IMG/VR virus record: IMGVR_UViG_3300034358_000008
Coordinates: 260,913 to 324,912 of that record
Length of the DNA: 64,000 nucleotides
Strand: one strand, 5' to 3'
Shown here: in pieces, positions 5,227 through 33,210 of the stretch
Numbering within the stretch: position 1 is the first letter of the stretch
How the letters are laid out: each line of letters opens with the position of its first letter
Program-made: the position numbers and the translations under genes
The notes under the pieces: generated by a model
Seen by the model: the letters and a program-made list of their open reading frames with translations, nothing else
Databases searched by the model: none
What the model was told of the DNA's origin: nothing

Positions 5227-8200
5227 ATGGCTAAAAAGACTATTCCTCTCGTCAAACCAAAAGGTACTGACGGCAAGGGGAACATCAAAGTACCGGGCGG
5301 TCCGTTGGTTCTAGACCTGGGCGATTTTGACGATATGTTTGGTCCTCTGGAGAGTGATTCTCCTAAGGGCGGACCTCTCGACGAATTCTGGTCAGGGATG
5401 AAAGAATCATTCAGTGATCGTGTACAGGTTAAAGATGTAGTCAGAAACTTTTTACGCTCGGCTGCTCCTGATGGTATCTCTAACCTGATGGGCTTTGCCG
5501 ATGAGGCATTGAGCGCATCTCGGGATATCAAAGAGTCTCTCGAACGTACTAACGCATCTGACCTACAATACATCGCTAAGCGGGCGCAAGCTCTCCTACC
5601 GAAATTACAAGACTACGCACCTGAAGGTATTTACAACGACATCAGTCAGGGTCTAGAGAATAAGATTGACGAGTACGACTACACGATTCAATCGGCTCGT
5701 GATCAAACTCCTATTCGTCGGGCTGCTCAAGAACGAACTGAAACTAGTGAGATCGAATCGGCACTGGACAACATTGCTCTCTCGAGCAAGGTTAACCACA
5801 ACCGCTCAGAACATGGCGCTCAAGTACGACATAACCAAACTCGTGCAGAAGCCAGTGTTCGTGATTTGCTCAAAACTAAACGCTTTGACTTCATGGCTAA
5901 GTCCATGGGCATGGCGAATGATAGCCTTCAACAAATTAATGGTTACAACCAACAGGTTAACTTTGGCTTCCAGCGTAAAGGCTTGGAACTCCAATTCCGT
6001 AGCTACATGGGTATCAAGGAACTCATCAAGCTTCAGGAAGCTAACCTTGAATTGAATGCTCGTGCATTTAATGCGATGATTCGTAACACCGGCATGACTG
6101 ACTTCGAGAAGAACGGGAATAAAGACCTGCAATCGATGGGTGGTCAAGGTGGTGGTAAGCGTCAAGGGTTGGTATCGAAAGCTACTAACAAAACCCTTTC
6201 TCACTTCCTTGGTAATTATGGTGGTGAAGCACAAGGTCGTATCTCAGGCGACATCAGTCAGAAACTCAGCATGGCCGTAATGGCTATGAAGATGGGTGAA
6301 GGTTCTGGCGGTAGCATGTGGAAGAACAAGTACAAGATGGCAGGTAACTTTGCTGGCGATCAAGCTGGCGACTTCATCTTGAATGAACTGATTCCAATGT
6401 TGGGTCGTGAGGCTCGTCCGGGTCTGACTCGTGCTTCTGACAAACACTTAGGTGGCGCACACAACAAGGTTGGTTATGCGTTGGATAACATCCCTGCGTT
6501 CTTGCAGGAGTTCGTTAACAACAACCAAAACCAACACGGGATGAAAGGAAAGCTCAGAGGTTTGATCGCTCCATACGTCCCACAGTTCGGTCTTCAAGAT
6601 CGCACGAAGAGTTCCAACTATCAAACAATTGATCAACCTGCCCAGTTTAACCAAATGACTCAACGAACTATCGTTGATGCTCTCCCCGGTTACTTGGCAC
6701 GTATTCTTCAAACTCTCCGTCAGATTAAGACAGGTAGTGACGATGTTGGTCGTGAGATTTGGGACTTCACCACAGGTAAGTTTACAGTAGAAGGTTCGGC
6801 CCATGATAGCCTCCTAGCTAAGATCGTTCCTAAGAATGCTATCCGTTCTGCATCGACTACTATTAACGACGCACTGAACACGATGGACTCCGGGGGCAAC
6901 CTTAGCCCTAAGGCTCGTCAAGCTTTGTCCGAACGTATGTTGCGTGATGCATCTACTAACCGTCGTTTCGATCCAGAGGCTTATGTCAAGTCTGGTGGTT
7001 ATGCTAAAGACATGCCTGCCGATGTTGCTAAAGAGCTGGAAGGCTTCTTTAATAGCAAGTTCGAGATGGATGGTCAAGGCGGGATGGTCGATAACGCCAA
7101 GAACAACAAACTCCGTCAAGAGTTTTCTCAAGCGTTCTTGGATATCCGTAGTATCTCTCGTGATCCAATCAAAGAGATCTCACGGATTATCGATTCGGGT
7201 CACACTGATGGTCTGCGTGCTATCGGTATCATTATTACTGAGGATGGGATCGATAAGATCAACTACCCTCGTATCTGGGAACTACTGCGAAGTGGTGTAA
7301 CGGATGGTAACCCATTCGGTCCAGGTGGTAATGGTGGACATGATCCAAGCCGTGATGATCAATCGGGTAACGCGGGTCATAAAGACTTCATGGGACCTAA
7401 GGCTCCAGGTGATGCCGATTGGGTTAAGGGTAAGCTGAGTCGGTTCCGTACCAAGTATGCTCCTGAAGAACAAGCTGCTCGTGATCAGATGGCTAAACAC
7501 CTGAAGACTATGCGTGGTCGTTTCGGTAGTGCTGCTAACCATGTTCAAGACATGGCTTCCAACTTACCGGGACAGTTCCAAGACCTCCAAAAACAAGCCG
7601 GTGAAGCAGGTGGTTATTCCCAACTGTTGAGCGGTAAGTATAAAGGCCAGATGCAGGGTATGGCCGATACCGGGATGGCTGGTTTCAATCAGTTCGTCGG
7701 TAAAGCATCTAACGTTGTAAACGACGCCGTCAGCAGTGTTGTTCACCGCTCCGAAGATGTTATCACAGACCTGTATTCCCAGTTCGATAAGAACTATCCG
7801 GCATTGCGGGCTAAGGATTTCGTTAACGGTAGTCTGATCGATGTTAACACCAAGCAAATTATTACCAAGCTCAGCGACATCACGGGTAAAGTAATTAACA
7901 TGGCTGGTGACACCATCCTGACCGCCAACGAAGTAGCTGCTGGGCTGATGAACCCAAATGGCGATATCGTTCTTAAGGTAGATGGGAATTCTACCAGTAA
8001 GGTTGGCGATGCAATCGATAAGAACCAACCTAAGCTTAACGGTGAAGGTGGGTCGGGTGATCCACAAGATCCTAACTCGGAAGAGAACCTCAATTCTCAA
8101 GACTGGGCACTTGGTCCCGGAGAGAATATCGTCCTTACTGCCCGTGGATTACTTAACGGTGAGTATCGAGATGAAGCAGGTAAGATCATCAACTCGATTA

Positions 8201-11200
8201 AGGATATTGCTGGTGACGTCTTTGACAAAACTGGTAACGTAGTCCTGACAGCTAAAGAGTTTGCTGGTGGTCTGTGGGGTCGTCGTTCTGGTACTCGTTA
8301 TCGTCCGACTAAGAACTTTGCTCGACTTCTTCGGTTGGGTAAAGCTGCCGGTAGGTTCTCCAGTCAGTCGGCTGGTACTATCGCTTGGGGCGCTACTAAG
8401 TTTATGGCTAAGGCCACACTTGGTATTGCATCTCGTCTGTTCAACATCTTCGTGGATAACCAGAACGCCTATACTGAAGGTGACCCTATCCCAGTATTGA
8501 CTCGTCGCTCTTTGGCTAACGGTGAATACTTTGATGATAAGGGTAAGGTCATTGAGAACTTTGTGGATGTGTATTCCATTATCCACGATGCTAAAGGTGA
8601 ACCGGTAATTCCTGCTGATCAATATAAACTACTCAAGAACTACGATGGTACTCGTCACGTACTGGCGAAGAACAAACGTATCTGGGGTAAGTTGGTCATG
8701 CGTCCTCTTCGGGCCATGCGTAACGCTTACGCTCGTCAAACCAAGAAGTACTACAAATGGCTCGGTAAAACGTCCGTTAAAGTAGGTGGTTGGGTAGGTA
8801 AGAAAACGTTGGGTGGTTTCGCTAAAGCAGGTGGGATGATCTTCAACCGCATGTTTGAGAAGATCCCTGATGAACAGCGTGCTACAGCGGAAGCGACAGC
8901 TGCCGGTGCATCCGTAGCTAACCAGCCTGTTGTCGAGGGCCTTCAAGAAATTCTTCAAGAACTGAAAGATCAGAAGCCTAAAGAAATCCGTAAGGGTAGC
9001 TGGCAAGATAAAGACGGGAAGAAAGAAGAAGGCGAGAAAGAGAAGAAAGGTGACGCGAAAGAAGAGAAGAAAAGTGGCTTCTTAAAACGTGGCCTTGCTG
9101 GTATTGCCGGTATGTTAGGCCTGGGCGGTAAGAAAAAGAAAGACGATGGTGAGGAAGGGGAAGAAGACGAAGATGGTGGTATCATGGACTCCATCAGTGG
9201 TGCTGCTGACATCAACTCGCTCTCGGGAGGGAAAGGCGGCAAGATCATGAAGTGGGGTAAGAAACTCATCGGCGGTAAAGCCAGTAAAATGCTCGGTAGC
9301 ATAGCTAGCTCGAAGGTTGGGCAGTTTATCGGTAAAGCTGGCGGCCAAATGCTGATGCGTGGTGCCATGATGGCAGGTACCGCTATTGCTGGGTTGTTGA
9401 GTGGACCTGTACTACTCATCGCTGCGGCAGTTGCCGTAACGGCAGGTGCAGCGTACCTTGGTTGGAACCGATACAAAAATATCTCGGGTGAATTCCGTGA
9501 ACTGCGGTTGGCTCAGTACGGTGTTGATAAACCGGTTAGCAAAGGTTTTATCGATTCCATTACATCGATGGATATGTTTAGTCTTGGTGGCGACAAAATC
9601 AAGATTCTCAAGATGGAAGGATTGCTTGATAAATTCACATCCAAAGACGCAGAGAAACCCCAAGTTAACATCAGTGGTGCAGGTGGTCAAGAACTGCTTG
9701 ACATCATGGGTATTGACATTGACGACGAAGCTGCTGTAATGGTGTTTGCACGTTGGCTCGAGAAACGTTTTAAACCAGTCTATCTCCAGTGGATTGGTGG
9801 TTTGAACAAGATCGGTCAAGGTACCGTTAATATCAACGACGTCGACGATAAAGTCCCTGAAGAACTGAAAGGTGATTTCCTTGAGACCATTCGATTCCCT
9901 TACAACAACGAGTCTCCTTACGTTGTAACCGAAAACCCATTCAGCCCAAGCTATCCCCTCCCTAACAACATGGACGTAATCTCTAAGATGTTCGATGAAC
10001 TCAAAGAGAAGTACGGCTTGAAGAAGAAAGAGGCGGAAGAGAAGAAAGCTGCTGAGGCTGGCAAAGACGGTAAACTGGGTACTCCTGCCGATGTGGCGAA
10101 GTCTGCTACTGATGGGATTGCTAAAGATGCTGTTGCTGCAACTGGTGGTGCCGCTGCTGGCGCTGGTGCAATGTCTGCTGCTCAAAAGCTGGCTAATGAA
10201 GCTAGTCAGAAAGATAAGACAGAGCAAGACAAGTTGAAGTCGCCTACTGAAGTTGCCAATGCAGGTGTGTTGTCTGCAAGCCAAGCTGTGGCTGGTATGA
10301 GCGGTGAGATTGCTGACCTTAGCGCGAAGTTGGGTCGTACTCTAACGGCGCTCCAAGCGATCCGTATGCGTGCGTACGGTATGCAGTTCCTTACCGCCGC
10401 TGAAGTTACTGCTGTATTAGCGTTGGAAGCTATCTATGCAAAAGACCTGACTGTATCAGCTACTAGTGTGGACTACGGCGGTGACGCTGGAGTACTACTT
10501 AGTGAAGCTGGACGTCTGTTGGGTAAAGATACTGCTATCGGTGCTGATGATCGATATGCATTGCATGGCTGGCTGACTAACCGTTTCACTCCTGTGTTCC
10601 GTGCATACTTCGGTGCTGCTCGTAACGTTCAACCTGCGGCTAGTCTGGCTGGTTTGGAATCGAAACTGACCGCCAGTGATAAGGTTACAGTGGCTACTGC
10701 CATGTTGGGTGCGTTGGATGCATTCAAACGCTCTATTTGGGATGCTCCATCGTTGTTTGAAATTATGGGCGATCCTAAACAGTTGAAGGCTCTGGCAGAT
10801 GCTGATCTGGCATCGTTGCAGAAAGACGCTGAGAAAGAAGCCCTTGCGACTCCTACTCAGAAATCATCCGATGCCGTAGCGGGTAAAGCAGCTGCTGATA
10901 AAGGTGGTAGTTTCGCAGATCAAGTCATGTCAGGTATTAAAGATACTTGGGACTCGGCTAAAGAAACTGTTTCGTCTGCATGGAACAATGCAACTGATGC
11001 CGTTGGTGATACTGTCGCCGGTGCTAAGATTGCATTGGGTATGGGTCCAGAGTTTGGTGGTGGCGGTACAGCCAAAGGTGGTACTGTTCAGTCCGCTGGT
11101 AATACCGGTGCAGTAGTTGCTGGTAACGGTGGTCAGTGGGAAGCTATTCCTATTCCTACGGCTAGTGGGTCTATCAAAGCTGCGCTGCCTACACTGAAAG

Positions 11201-25186: not shown

Positions 25187-25233
25187 ACATATCGCCAGTC
25201 CTTCGGGACTGGCTTTATGCCTTTTTCTTTTTT
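25187..25233 (+). terminator. Intrinsic terminator
   Basis: GCCAGTCC-TTCG-GGACTGGC with long T tract. Confidence 0.85.
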
Positions 25234-25281
25234 GTGTTCAATGTAATGTATAGATAAGTCCACTCTGACACGGAGGGGGAC

Positions 25282-30182: not shown

Positions 30183-32312
30183 TTATCTCATCCAAGATGG
30201 TAGCAATGGCTTAGATTCTTGCTTGTACGTAAATTGATTGAAATCAATTTTGATATCATACATTTCAAAAGCCTTCGTCAATGTTTGATACATTATTTTG
30301 TTATCATCAAACTGACCTTCCTTTATTGCTTCCATAGCTGCTTGTTCAAATACGTCACCTTCGACAAATGGTGACGATATTCCCATTATGAGCGAAACTT
30401 GTTCAGTAGACCATGCCAAGATATCGGCAGAGCGAGTGGAAATGTTTGGGATCTCTCCAGTGTCAAGGATACATTGATAAACGTAAGTCTGAGAGTCTTG
30501 CCCTAAACGATAGATACGGGAAATCGCCTGTTCCAGAATGTAAGCACGGAAAGGAGAGTTCAACAGGATCATCGTGTCTGCCATGGTGAGTCGTACACCA
30601 GTAGACAGCGAGGCATATGTAGCCAACAACGGGTTCAGTTTGTCATCTGTTTCGAAACGCTTAACCATAGCTGGGAGATCGTTAGACGTCTTCCCGTATA
30701 CAACCAATGGCTTCATACCCAGTCGAGTAGTAAACACGTCAGCGGCGTCTACAGCCTCGATGAAGCTGGTAAACATGATGGTCTTCTTCTGAGTAGACTC
30801 AACAATGCCAACCCAGTCGATATGTGGGATCATAGCCACGTTTGCTTCGATACGCATACCACCTACGATCCGGCCCAATACTTCACCTTGGATCTTAAGG
30901 TTAACGTATTTGATTACAGACTTAACGTCACGGAATCGTGGGATCATCTCACGGGGTAAGAGTTTCTCAAAGACATGCTTCTCAAATGAGTTAGCCGCCT
31001 TCATCTCATCACCCAAGAACCTAGGGTCTGGTGTACGAGAAATCAAGTGTACCTTATACAGATACTCATCGAACTCTACCAGTTCTTGTTTCTTGATGAT
31101 CTTAGATCGGGCAAGCTTAACGCATTGATCCCAGAACTTAAGATCATCAGGGCGGCGGTCTTTATAGTAGGTTGCTCGTTCTTTGATGAAAGCTTCCATG
31201 ACCTTACGAATAGCAGGTAGGGTAAACCGCTCACCATCTGGAATACGGATTGGGTAACTACGCATGATCGGTGGTAACAGCTCAGCGTCAATCTCACCCT
31301 TCTCTACTTTATACGACACCAAACCCAATCGGTGACGAATAATGTCCAACCCTTTCGAAGCTTCCTTACCGTACATCTTCTTGAAGGCAAGTTCTACACG
31401 TGGAGTGAACAGTGGATCTACTACGCGGAGCAGAGTAATGATCTCAGCACCCAGTGCTTTAACTGGTGTACCGGAGCCTTGGATGTTATCACGTGAACCA
31501 AACTTCTTAACCAGTTCTTGATACAGCATACTACGTGCGGAAGTAGGATCGTTCATGTTGTGCGATTCATCTAGAATCGTAACGATCTTCTTACCAGCGA
31601 AAGACTTAGGGTTCTCAAAGATCTCGTTGAGTTTATGCATTGCGTCGTAGTGACACAGTACCCAACGTTGCCCAGTGTATTCCATCGGTGTGCCGGAATG
31701 CCAGATCGTCTGAGGTGTCTTAAACATCTCATTAATCGATTCGAGCCATACTGACTCTAGAACGATTTTAGGACAGAAGACTATGACGAGGTCAGCGTTC
31801 AACATTTCGGCTAGTGCAGAGGCCATGTAGGTCTTCCCAGAACCTGCTGCGGCTGCCATCAAGTCACCCAGTAAGTTATACTGGTCCAGACGGTAGCTAT
31901 AGTTCTCGAAGTACTCCATTTGATACGGCTTAGCTGTATAAGTGAGGTTACTCAGCTTACGGAAGTCTAGTCGTCCAGGGACAGTGGCTTTATCTACCGG
32001 TTTGGTATTAGCTAGATACGTATTCGTCATCATCGCTTCAATGATACCATTGATAGCTTTAATGCTAGTCCAACGGTTTCGATAGAACTTGATGTTCTCC
32101 AGAATGTACATGATCTCTGGAGCCCAGAACTTATCAAAGCTAAAGGAACCACTACTTACGGTGTTGAAGATGTTTTGGGAAATGCGAGTTGTCTTCCAGA
32201 ACTTATCCATGTCTCGGATAATGTCCTTAGCTCTGATACCAGAGACGACGATCTCAGCATTAGTCTCCTTTACGGTTACATTACCGAATAAGGATCTGAA
32301 TGAGTCGATCAT
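30183..32312 (-). CDS. SF2 (SNF2/DEAD-like) helicase (phiKZ gp203-like)
   Basis: AAGSGKT, LDESH, SGTP, STGV.L, QAISRIYRLGQ motifs. Confidence 0.9.
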   Translation of the reverse strand: MIDSFRSLFGNVTVKETNAEIVVSGIRAKDIIRDMDKFWKTTRISQNIFNTVSSGSFSFDKFWAPEIMYILENIKFYRNRWTSIKAINGIIEAMMTNTYLANTKPVDKATVPGRLDFRKLSNLTYTAKPYQMEYFENYSYRLDQYNLLGDLMAAAAGSGKTYMASALAEMLNADLVIVFCPKIVLESVWLESINEMFKTPQTIWHSGTPMEYTGQRWVLCHYDAMHKLNEIFENPKSFAGKKIVTILDESHNMNDPTSARSMLYQELVKKFGSRDNIQGSGTPVKALGAEIITLLRVVDPLFTPRVELAFKKMYGKEASKGLDIIRHRLGLVSYKVEKGEIDAELLPPIMRSYPIRIPDGERFTLPAIRKVMEAFIKERATYYKDRRPDDLKFWDQCVKLARSKIIKKQELVEFDEYLYKVHLISRTPDPRFLGDEMKAANSFEKHVFEKLLPREMIPRFRDVKSVIKYVNLKIQGEVLGRIVGGMRIEANVAMIPHIDWVGIVESTQKKTIMFTSFIEAVDAADVFTTRLGMKPLVVYGKTSNDLPAMVKRFETDDKLNPLLATYASLSTGVRLTMADTMILLNSPFRAYILEQAISRIYRLGQDSQTYVYQCILDTGEIPNISTRSADILAWSTEQVSLIMGISSPFVEGDVFEQAAMEAIKEGQFDDNKIMYQTLTKAFEMYDIKIDFNQFTYKQESKPLLPSWMR

Positions 32313-32507: not shown

Positions 32508-32744
32508 ATGTCTATGAAAACAGATAAGTCGAAATACGAAGCTGAATGGAAAATGCGTGGCTGGGGACCTAAGTTCACTTGCCCTAGTCATTACGCCAAA
32601 GTCTATTTCGATACTCCAGAGGAAATGGAGGATTGGGTTAAGCATAACAACGAGCTACCTACTAATCACAGGTGGGCTAAGTATTTTGAAGTTAGGGATC
32701 TTGAGACGGATAGGATTGTCCATCGTAATCATTACCCTTACTAA
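32508..32744 (+). CDS. Hypothetical early protein
   Basis: Own promoter, RBS and terminator. Confidence 0.75.
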   Translation: MSMKTDKSKYEAEWKMRGWGPKFTCPSHYAKVYFDTPEEMEDWVKHNNELPTNHRWAKYFEVRDLETDRIVHRNHYPY

Positions 32745-32749
32745 TAATA

Positions 32750-32790
32750 GCCCTACCTCACGGTAGGGCGCTATACCTTTTCTTTTTTGT
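32750..32790 (+). terminator. Intrinsic terminator
   Basis: GCCCTACC-TCAC-GGTAGGGC followed by T tracts. Confidence 0.75.
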
Positions 32791-32819
32791 TTAAAAGAAT
32801 ACTTCAGCATACATGGTAT

Positions 32820-33000
32820 AGTCAAGAAGCAGTCCGTGCAATTACGCACTGCGTTCAAGGGGGTGATCCAGCCATAGGTGACCTGGTACGTTAAGAATAC
32901 TAGCGGGAGCTAGCATCAGTACCTAACTACGTGCTTCTTCGACTTTCATTAGGCTTATCTAATCTAATGGGTATCTAGCCTTCCCTTAGCGGGAAGGCTT
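32820..33000 (+). ncRNA. Putative structured small RNA carrying a complement to the 16S rRNA 3' end
   Basis: No long plus-strand ORF. Closing stem AGTCAAGAAGCA(32820-31)/TGCTTCTTCGACT(32932-44), inner hairpins GTGC/GCAC and CTAGC-GGGA-GCTAG, and AAGGGGGTGATCCAGCCATAGGT at 32857-79. Ends in a terminator. Confidence 0.6.
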
Positions 33001-33006
33001 TATGCC
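32977..33006 (+). terminator. Intrinsic terminator
   Basis: AGCCTTCCC-TTAGC-GGGAAGGCT-TTATG. Confidence 0.75.
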
Positions 33007-33030
33007 GTCACTAACAATTGAGGATTGTTT

Positions 33031-33210
33031 ATGAAGGTCGATTATAACAACGTGGATGGTCGAGAATGTGCTGTGAAACCTAATTACAAGTTTTTTGTCG
33101 AAGAAGCTCTCAAGCGTGTAGGCGAAGGGTTTCGAGCAGCTACTGAGAGAGACCCATGTACCGCTAGAGATAACGGTGAACCTAACGTTAATGAGAGAAG
33201 ATACAGATGA
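33031..33210 (+). CDS. Arg/Asp-rich microprotein
   Basis: GAGG RBS; ATGA coupling with the next gene. Confidence 0.6.
   Translation: MKVDYNNVDGRECAVKPNYKFFVEEALKRVGEGFRAATERDPCTARDNGEPNVNERRYR

Follow-up and report, generated by a model that had tools for sequence, protein, structure and literature searches.

The locus described here raises the question of whether phages encode a small RNA (sRNA) that is directed at the 3' end of the 16S ribosomal RNA (rRNA) of their host. It lies in a 64,000-nucleotide (nt) stretch of DNA, positions 260,913 to 324,912 of the IMG/VR virus record IMGVR_UViG_3300034358_000008, which is referred to as the window. Here, a non-coding interval (32745-33031) separates an open reading frame (ORF) of 78 amino acids (aa; 32508-32744, +) from the next ORF (start 33032, +). 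An initial annotation, made from the letters of the sequence, had placed in this interval a stand-alone structured RNA that displays a 23-nt complement to the 16S rRNA 3' end. A stand-alone structured RNA on the plus strand is also what the present analysis arrived at, given a family of homologues, covarying helices and a terminator belonging to the element itself, and it is practically certain that the element is a real conserved structured RNA gene. Its most conserved part is a segment complementary to the free 3' tail of 16S rRNA. The reading preferred here, which is given slightly better than even chances, is that the sRNA docks on the 30S subunit via this tail during middle or late infection and either occludes initiation that depends on Shine-Dalgarno (SD) sequences or parks the subunit.

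Homologues in Pseudomonas jumbo phages and related contigs

The family comprises 31 distinct homologous sequences from Pseudomonas jumbo phages and related metagenomic contigs. Its members from named phages are phiKZ, PhiPA3, 201phi2-1, Viktualia, PS119XW/PA1C, RVTF4, Phabio and pPa_SNUABM_DT01 (DT01), and all cultured members infect Pseudomonas. When 50,697 phage records were searched by sensitive blastn with the 1.2 kb surrounding the site, the group of 201phi2-1, Viktualia and PS119XW/PA1C/phiHQ/BRkr was returned. These matches were confined to the non-coding part (~32778-33023), and the flanking ORFs were not conserved at the DNA level. PhiPA3, phiKZ with many of its close relatives, and DT01 were added via similarity searches, and RVTF4 and Phabio by inspecting the flanks of a homologous helicase gene. 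Scans of IMG/VR and of metagenomes for the exact motif described below yielded three further clades (B-D), in which DT01 (clade C) is the only named phage and most contigs are 94-320 kb long. In the surroundings of the homologous helicase gene, which were scanned up to a distance of 8 kb, no member was found in Klebsiella LPKP23, Xanthomonas RTH11, Erwinia RAY, Burkholderia FLC9 or Ralstonia RP12. The phiKZ genome contains exactly one copy, located between gp203 and gp204, and no second copy was found there. The gene occupies about 212,853-213,040 (+) in phiKZ (NC_004629) and about 229,019-229,215 (+) in 201phi2-1 (NC_010821).

The element did not correspond to a catalogued RNA family. With Rfam 15, nothing in the 64-kb window reached a gathering threshold, and at E-values up to 10 on positions 32700-33100 only a spurious U6atac match upstream of the element was returned. 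No transfer RNA or transfer-messenger RNA gene was detected in the window by ARAGORN.

Three kinds of secondary matches and annotations were encountered. A weak match of the first covariance model in 201phi2-1 (L001 1374-1486, between gp301 and gp302, E = 0.66) was rejected because its sequence, AAGGAGGGGGAGTTCCTCCC, looks like an ordinary terminator-like hairpin; it was carried as one noise row in two of the covariance-model alignments. In Viktualia (L002 2545-2634, +) and DT01 (L161 4031-4153, -), small hypothetical proteins are annotated across the RNA gene on opposite strands, and these are probably annotation artefacts. Furthermore, the exact 16-mer of the motif occurs in frame within a conserved bacterial coding sequence (…SPSKGVIQPDFDP…) in the metagenomic contigs L162, L165 and L177. 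This coding sequence was taken to be trpC-like and the occurrence to be a recurrent chance match, which motif searches must filter.

Secondary structure and covariation

Since a MAFFT alignment of all clades was not structural for RNAalifold, an alignment of five sequences was annotated by hand, converted into a covariance model and iterated. The resulting consensus fold is a three-way junction of the helices P1, P2 and P3, the last with an additional helix P3b, and the invariant segment is located on a junction strand about 35 nt long (Table 1). In 32 distinct rows, 93.1 % of the cells were standard pairs compared with 64.8 +/- 1.1 % with shuffled partners, a figure that is somewhat inflated because the alignments were fitted to the covariance model, although the helices still have visibly different sequences between the clades. 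Both sides had changed in 26 of the 29 pairs. The covariation score was 0.673 as against 0.209 in shuffles, none of 500 reaching the observed value, and it amounted to 0.06-0.09 after the partners had been slid by one to three columns. An earlier alignment of 24 rows agrees with these results, with up to 94.5 % paired cells compared with up to 67 % when shuffled and covariation scores from 0.64.

The individual helices illustrate how freely the sequence varies while the pairing is kept. In P2, five of seven pairs have changed on both sides with 97.6 % of cells paired, and its stem takes the form GGAC/GUCC in RVTF4, GUACU/AGUAC in contig L019 and GGUGU/ACACC in contig L081. For P3 and P3b, all 12 pairs have changed on both sides. 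P3 reads GGUAC/GUACC, GAUAC/GUAUC, AUGAGC/GCUCAU, GAAUCC/GGAUUC, GGAACG/CGUUCC or GGGGUUA/UAGCCCC across the clades, and P3b is capped by GGGA, GAGA, GCGA or GUGA in 29 of the 31 members.

The stems named by the initial annotation were all recovered, namely the closing stem (32820-32831/32932-32944), the GGTAC/GTACC arm (32885-32889/32919-32923) and its cap CTAGC-GGGA-GCTAG (32900-32913). The GTGC/GCAC hairpin is likewise present, but it had been drawn too short, since it consists of an outer GCAGU/ACUGC and an inner stem spanning 32830-32851. The covariance model that had been suggested as a check thus gave covarying stems, with the anti-16S segment as the invariant part. One hairpin, P4, goes beyond the earlier description. 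Its stem sequence differs among the window, 201phi2-1 and Viktualia yet remains paired, its loop motif CUAUYCUAAYC is conserved and followed by GGGUAU, and clades B-D are without it. P4 could be a second binding site.

Two further results concern the strand and the weight of the different kinds of evidence. G-U cells outnumber A-C cells by 52 to 16, and the terminators sit on the plus strand, which together assign the RNA to this strand. The minimum-energy fold of the single sequence had a z-score of -1.59 against shuffles, which is uninformative alone, and a match to the 17-mer with up to three mismatches arose in 12 of 100 shuffles of the window. Because the window sequence by itself is weak evidence, the case rests on homologue conservation and covariation.

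The invariant segment and its complementarity to 16S rRNA

The 23-nt sequence singled out by the initial annotation, AAGGGGGTGATCCAGCCATAGGT, is located at 32857-32879 (+). Its core, AGGRGGUGAUCCA, is invariant in the family and is extended to the 17-mer AAGGGGGUGAUCCAGCC in most members. The consensus was 0.98 over 16 motif columns, compared with 0.57 for the other well-occupied unpaired columns, in a set in which many members had been found with the exact 16-mer as bait and about eight lineages had been ascertained independently by flanking similarity or synteny. In these eight lineages, positions 1-3 and 5-13 of the core never vary. Outside the motif, the mean pairwise identity is 0.44 with a minimum of 0.23. 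Position 4 of the core is G or A, with A, and therefore AGGAGG, in RVTF4, L080/L102, Phabio and L081, and 27 of the 31 members read GGGGG and are without GGA. Variation increases towards the 3' side, where phiKZ has CCAGUC, DT01 has CCAGCA and Phabio carries a 7-nt insertion after CCA. The 6 nt that follow the 17-mer are not conserved, their AUAGGU being specific to the subclade of the window and 201phi2-1. Of the proposed 23-nt match, 17 contiguous pairs with 16S rRNA, one of them G-U, were retained, whereas conservation is limited to 13-17 of the 23 nt.

For the comparison with the target, the 16S 3' end was taken from contig L108 and aligned to the Rfam bacterial small-subunit (SSU) rRNA consensus. 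In this consensus, helix 45 (uagCcguacc-GGAA-ggugcgGcug) is the last paired element, and 13 unpaired nt, GAUcACCUCCUUu, come after it. The 17-mer pairs with 12 residues of this free tail, up to the penultimate 16S nucleotide, and with the last five of the helix 45 3' strand. The universal 13-nt core matches the extent of the free tail almost exactly. Most of the changes tolerated in the motif preserve the pairing: the G or A at position 4 of the core faces the U of CCUCC as a G-U or A-U pair, and the C-to-U change in phiKZ faces a G, so that the duplex is kept.

The calculated energies set this duplex apart from ordinary SD pairing. The 17-bp duplex of the 17-mer with 16S rRNA reaches -33 kcal/mol, the phiKZ variant -30.3 kcal/mol and the Phabio variant -25.8 kcal/mol, and pairing of the motif with the free tail only gives -19.6 to -20.9 kcal/mol. 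For comparison, GGAGG with the 16S tail has -8.7 kcal/mol, and the best site in the shuffled whole sRNA has -14.7 +/- 2.5 kcal/mol (minimum -22.6 kcal/mol). Among the 68 putative genes in the window, the median SD duplex energy is -5.2 kcal/mol and the best value -11.9 kcal/mol, with 32 % of these genes having an SD at or below -6 kcal/mol. A phage-encoded antisense target was also sought. No site with up to three mismatches was found in the window, and none better than -24 kcal/mol on either strand of the complete phiKZ genome, where most of the best sites are on non-coding strands. Since the full duplex of the phiKZ variant with 16S rRNA is more stable than that with any of these phiKZ sites and the window holds no site with up to three mismatches, 16S rRNA is by far the best candidate partner. 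On these sequence grounds, pairing of the sRNA with 16S rRNA is probable.

A further question is whether the segment is accessible. In partition-function folding of 24 full transcripts, GAUCCAGCC had a mean probability of being unpaired of 0.55-0.78, compared with only 0.06-0.30 for the G-run. The display of the segment claimed by the initial annotation is weakened by the prediction that the G-run, its SD-like part, is mostly paired internally. In the predicted folds, the G-run pairs with a C-rich tract just before P3, which is found in 30 of the 31 members (ACCU, ACUU, UCUCC, UUCCC or ACCC), and the C/U variation of this tract opposite G is compatible with pairing. As both sides are nearly invariant, covariation cannot prove this helix. 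If it is real, the folding model would place UGAUCCAGCC in a loop and mask the SD-like half until strand exchange with the 16S tail.

Absence of a start codon at Shine-Dalgarno spacing

No member has an ATG, GTG or TTG at SD spacing (5-10 nt) after the SD-like core, where the invariant positions read UGAUCCAGCC. That the segment is a very strong but otherwise ordinary ribosome-binding site (RBS) for a tiny peptide has next to negligible probability. The reading can draw on a GUG inside the motif, which opens a 4-aa ORF, and on a GUG 6 nt past the motif in the window, which opens an 11-aa ORF. The first of these has no spacing from the SD. The second is confined to the subclade of the window and 201phi2-1, and in PS119XW, phiKZ and clades B-D neither its start nor its frame and length are preserved. 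Moreover, the substitutions in the stems are compensatory at the RNA level and not synonymous. The initial annotation had likewise argued against an ordinary RBS, and in view of the missing start codons and of peptides that are not conserved, this assessment stands.

Genuine sites of this kind do exist in other phages. In the unrelated phage contigs L154 (~5735-5750) and L071 (~10972-10987) from IMG/VR, the same 16-nt extended SD is followed by an ATG at offset 10 after GGAGG. Because these contigs use them as genuine RBSs, extended SDs of this length are real translation signals elsewhere, and the ATG at offset 10 is the feature that the sRNA family does not share.

Transcription signals and gene contexts

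The 5' end of the element is preceded by signals that resemble phage promoters (Table 1). At the same distance upstream, a box reads AAAAGAATAC in the window, AAAGATTAC in PS119XW and AAAACTTAC in PhiPA3, and four phages share its AA....TACT without change. Clades B-D have a TATG box where the window clade has TATAG, and P1 begins with the G of this TATG. The middle promoters of phiKZ contain AAanTTACc centred near -24, and the late consensus of its non-virion RNA polymerase (nvRNAP) is TATG with its last G as +1 (PMC4666361). These resemblances lead us to infer that a phage promoter of the middle or late type starts transcription at G32821 (+1), which would make the transcript about 185 nt long. 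Such a promoter would fit the fact that the locus went unreported in early differential RNA sequencing (dRNA-seq) and in gradient profiling by sequencing (Grad-seq) at 10 min. ONT-cappable-seq of phiKZ or 201phi2-1 may have recorded this locus among its unnamed sRNA candidates.

Every member ends in a terminator hairpin rich in GC, with UUUAUGCC or a closely similar tail after it. The same hairpin with TTTATGCC ends a protein gene of the window at 25195-25221 (+), and a T-run and a TATAG box (25249-25253) come after it. Since this tail also ends a protein gene, UUUAUGCC is regarded as a generic phage terminator signal, and both the terminator at 25195-25221 and the TATAG box at 25249-25253 look like generic signals of the phage. 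For the same reason, a role of the tail UUAUGCC as start codon or pairing partner was rejected, as it ends an unrelated protein gene as well.

In the window, the next ORF begins 26 nt past the terminator tail, which leaves no room for a promoter and means that read-through would make the element the leader of that gene. The sRNA family could therefore be a cis-acting leader in which read-through mRNAs carry a super-SD that recruits 30S subunits as a stabiliser, similar to STAB-SD, or as a standby or loading site, with the short RNA as a by-product. The situation is the same in PhiPA3, where the helicase gene follows the sRNA within about 30 nt. Furthermore, 8 of 11 reported sRNAs of 201phi2-1 arise via premature termination in 5' untranslated regions (PMC11512511).

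An SD-like sequence without a start codon is also said to be the hallmark of STAB-SD. Several features of the other members do not agree with a leader. The downstream genes are not homologous between members, and in PS119XW the next gene is convergent, which leaves nothing to lead. Between the sRNA terminator and the gene that follows it, phiKZ (L032 2715-2727), RVTF4, L080 and Phabio have an AT-rich box, AAATCTATATTAC, which is absent from the window and PhiPA3. It was taken, from its sequence, as a putative phiKZ-type early promoter, which would give the next gene a start of its own. In addition, all members keep a strong terminator and an elaborate scaffold of covarying helices, neither of which a simple stabiliser would need. 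The cis-acting leader was consequently considered unlikely, although it deserves some weight as the main rival of the preferred reading.

The position of the terminator directly downstream of a junction with invariant unpaired nucleotides and a GNRA loop also recalls a riboswitch or attenuator. In such a leader, the junction would be the aptamer, the terminator the expression platform and the likeness to anti-16S irrelevant. This is very improbable, since chance cannot account for a 17-nt complement that ends at the 3' end of 16S rRNA, and since no conserved alternative antiterminator pairing was seen in the family, the genes downstream differ or are convergent, and Rfam gave no match even at E = 10. 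The ribosome-coupled form of attenuation can be dismissed on other grounds. Middle and late transcription occurs inside the phage nucleus, and the ribosomes are cytoplasmic (PMC12908238). Transcription is thus apart from the ribosomes, which rules out coupling, and contact of the sRNA with the 30S subunit would have to follow export, in trans or at least post-transcriptionally.

Proposed action on the 30S subunit and alternatives

If the sRNA docks on the 30S subunit, the following course of events can be envisaged. The phage nvRNAP would transcribe the sRNA from the middle- or late-type promoter, with the intrinsic terminator ending it, and the RNA would be exported from the phage nucleus and then meet host 30S subunits. 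The invariant segment would pair with the whole single-stranded 16S 3' tail, that is, the anti-SD and the linker (12-13 bp), and in most members the pairing would extend to up to 5 nt of the helix 45 3' strand. Since the predicted duplex is two to four times as stable as that of any SD in the window, the sRNA would occupy the anti-SD like a non-translatable super-mRNA. If it is abundant, the expected outcome would be competitive occlusion of SD-dependent initiation, or idle parked 30S subunits, in the middle to late phase. Speculatively, strongly SD-dependent host messages might be hit harder than phage messages with modest SDs, and a turn to initiation with weak SDs or without them could benefit the phage relative to the host. 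The more general proposition, that nucleus-forming and related jumbo phages of Pseudomonas encode an 'anti-anti-SD' RNA whose 13-17-bp duplex with 16S rRNA reprogrammes, parks or protects the 30S subunit, falls just short of an even chance.

Several points weigh against this proposal. A blanket block of initiation would also hurt the phage, because phage genes use SDs. The predicted internal pairing of the G-run would have to open before 16S rRNA can be bound. Similarly, the last four to five pairs would need helix 45, with a fold energy of -18 kcal/mol, to be partly unwound, and these positions vary. The invasion of helix 45 put forward by the initial annotation applies to up to 5 nt in most members, but it is not universal, given the insertion in Phabio and the terminal A in DT01. 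The invariance of the motif reflects to a considerable extent how the set was assembled, since the exact 16-mer served as bait for many members. As all known hosts are Pseudomonas, there is no variation in which the motif could covary with host 16S rRNA, and a 16S tail of the E. coli type would pair equally well via G-U. Finally, Grad-seq of phiKZ at 10 min post infection reported two other non-coding RNAs (ncRNAs) and not the sRNA locus (PMC8545117), which is also not mentioned in the published dRNA-seq of phiKZ at early times.

Exact scans for E. coli-type variants of the motif (…CCAACC) returned only coding matches, genuine RBSs and rRNA fragments, a scan that could not discriminate because CCAGCC also pairs with GGUUGG via G-U. 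As a separate observation, the 93-kb 'viral' contig L137 (IMG/VR 651053022_000007) carries two truncated E. coli-type 16S 3' ends with spacer (2440-2455, -; 10478-10493, +). The two copies are inverted and about 8 kb apart, and in both the rRNA stops right after …CCAACC.

Mimicry of binding sites by RNA sponges is well known, RsmY/RsmZ and 6S RNA being examples. The phage RNA could be a decoy or sponge for an SD-recognising protein, such as a RegB-like GGAG endoribonuclease, a defence nuclease or an RBS-binding repressor, with the 16S match as a side effect. The most constrained part of the RNA, the SD-like half together with UGAUCCA, would suit such a partner, and the AGGAGG members carry GGA. 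However, the conservation continues for 7-11 nt past the end of any SD and stays exactly in register with the 16S tail, which a GGAG-binding protein does not need. As most members read GGGGG and have no GGA, they lack the RsmA/CsrA motif. Each RNA also has a single site as opposed to several in sponges, and the several GGA loop motifs of an RsmA/CsrA-titrating RNA of the RsmY/RsmZ type were not found. A decoy is therefore distinctly unlikely.

Docking of the sRNA on the 16S tail could, on the other hand, serve another purpose than the control of initiation. The same duplex might block 3'-to-5' decay of 16S rRNA, hibernation factors or toxins, or act as an adaptor for a phage factor. It would leave one unpaired nucleotide at the 16S 3' end, and the conserved GNRA arm, together with the P4 loop in the clade of named phages, offers candidate sites for a second partner. 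Proteins of phiKZ are reported to target ribosomes (PMC10914614). A ribosome whose anti-SD is occupied cannot, however, use SD-led phage messages, and the phage uses SDs. A protective or adaptor function was given a low probability, and occlusion or parking of the 30S subunit by the sRNA is preferred to it.

Comparison with known systems

With regard to known systems, the SD-like sequence without a start codon invites comparison with STAB-SD, which Agaisse and Lereclus reportedly defined in these terms in 1996. The STAB-SD of the cry3A leader of Bacillus thuringiensis shares with the phage element this sequence feature and the proposed pairing with the 16S 3' end that holds a 30S subunit. It differs in being a short cis element of about 9 nt near the 5' end of a long mRNA in a Gram-positive bacterium, without a conserved scaffold. 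In contrast, the phage element has 13-17 invariant nt over the whole 16S tail, a covarying three-way junction, a predicted promoter and a terminator of its own, and varied gene contexts. A position in a 5' leader was not found for the family, as a conserved terminator intervenes and the downstream gene of PS119XW is convergent.

A likeness of another kind exists to 6S RNA. Both share the logic of a structured RNA that mimics the nucleic-acid substrate of a core machine and fills its recognition site. The machine is RNA polymerase in one case and, as proposed here, the ribosome in the other, the folds are different and there is no homology in sequence or structure, so that the likeness is one of mode only. 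In its proposed action, the element comes closest to a ribosomal analogue of 6S RNA or to a much extended STAB-SD that acts in trans, and it belongs to neither family. Classical sRNAs share with the phage RNA a short conserved seed, a structured RNA of 100-200 nt and an intrinsic terminator. In most cases, however, their seeds are rich in C and U and bind mRNAs at the SD region, whereas the phage seed is itself SD-like and far longer.

The small subunit is also a target of ribosome-associated ncRNAs such as the Val-tRNA fragment that binds the archaeal 30S subunit (PMC11009984). These are, like the proposed phage RNA, small ncRNAs that act on the small subunit and damp initiation globally. They are processing fragments at the decoding or mRNA-channel region, whereas the phage RNA is the product of a dedicated gene with proposed Watson-Crick pairing to the anti-SD. 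An anti-SD-occluding protein is known in bS21 of Bacteroidetes (PMC7797042). Together with RMF and synthetic antisense oligomers against the 16S 3' end, bS21 shares with the phage element the target and the expected loss of SD-dependent initiation. These known occluders are proteins or man-made oligomers, whereas the phage element is an RNA. In the literature searched, no report was found of a phage or bacterial sRNA that pairs with the anti-SD, nor of any natural trans-acting RNA aimed at it, and two recent reviews on jumbo phages mention ncRNAs only in passing.

The possible implications are considerable since phiKZ, PhiPA3 and 201phi2-1 are model nucleus-forming phages. The question addressed is how host translation is taken over after transcription and translation have been separated. 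To our knowledge, only proteins, such as phiKZ gp14, have so far been found to touch the ribosome in nucleus-forming phages. If the proposal is true, the anti-SD would for the first time be shown to be the target of a natural RNA acting in trans, and the sRNA would stand to the ribosome as 6S RNA stands to RNA polymerase. It would represent a new mode of ribosome control and explain a strongly constrained non-coding locus in well-studied genomes. The element would also add an RNA family that is absent from Rfam, and the motif could serve as a natural design for ribosome-binding RNA tools.

Features of the locus and its gene neighbourhood

Table 1. Features of the sRNA locus in the window, given as positions of the 64,000-nt stretch
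Feature	Position	Strand	Remarks
Terminator of the upstream 78-aa ORF	32750-32790 (hairpin 32750-32769, then T-rich run)	+	Marks the 5' limit of the RNA gene
Upstream promoter box (putative), AAAAGAATAC	32793-32802	+	Centred ~24 nt before the predicted start; resembles AAanTTACc
TATAG box	32817-32821	+	Predicted +1 = G32821, first base of the closing stem
sRNA gene	32821-33006	+	~185 nt; predicted promoter and own terminator
P1 closing stem, 5' strand	32820-32829	+	10 pairs, 9 changed on both sides, 94.5 % of cells paired
P2 hairpin	32830-32851	+	Outer GCAGU/ACUGC, inner CGU/ACG, 6-nt loop
Anti-16S segment, AAGGGGGUGAUCCAGCC	32857-32873	+	Universal core AGGRGGUGAUCCA = 32858-32870
Variable linker	32874-32884	+	Between the anti-16S segment and P3; ends in C-rich ACCU (32881-32884)
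P3 arm, GGUAC/GUACC	32885-32889 / 32919-32923	+	Helix carrying P3b
P3b	32897-32904 / 32909-32916	+	Within the P3 arm; GNRA loop GGGA 32905-32908
P3-P1 junction strand	32924-32933	+	Conserved ACG 32929-32931; ACG/ACGG in nearly all members
P1 closing stem, 3' strand	32934-32944	+	From the covariance-model alignments
P4 hairpin, CAUUAG/CUAAUG	32947-32969	+	Only in the clade of the named phages and the window
Intrinsic terminator	Stem 32977-32985 / 32991-32999, to 33006	+	Own 3' end; tail UUAUGCC

The limits of the element agree with the initial annotation, which had described it as lying between two intrinsic terminators without a meaningful ORF on the plus strand. The upstream hairpin (32750-32769) with its T-run and the element's own hairpin (32977-32999) with TTATGCC were both identified, and the sole ORF across the element is a TTG ORF of 35 aa that is not conserved. 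According to the alignment, a hairpin and a T-rich run are found at the equivalent upstream place in 201phi2-1 and Viktualia.

Both flanking ORFs are located downstream of a divergent helicase gene (30183-32312, -), whose product of 709 aa is SNF2/DarB-like and homologous to the virion protein gp203 of phiKZ. DT01 has no annotated helicase within 4 kb of the sRNA gene. The helicase gene adjoins the sRNA gene in the window, phiKZ, PhiPA3 and PS119XW and is about 1.5 kb away from it in 201phi2-1; it is also found near the sRNA gene in RVTF4, Phabio and the metagenomic contig L024.

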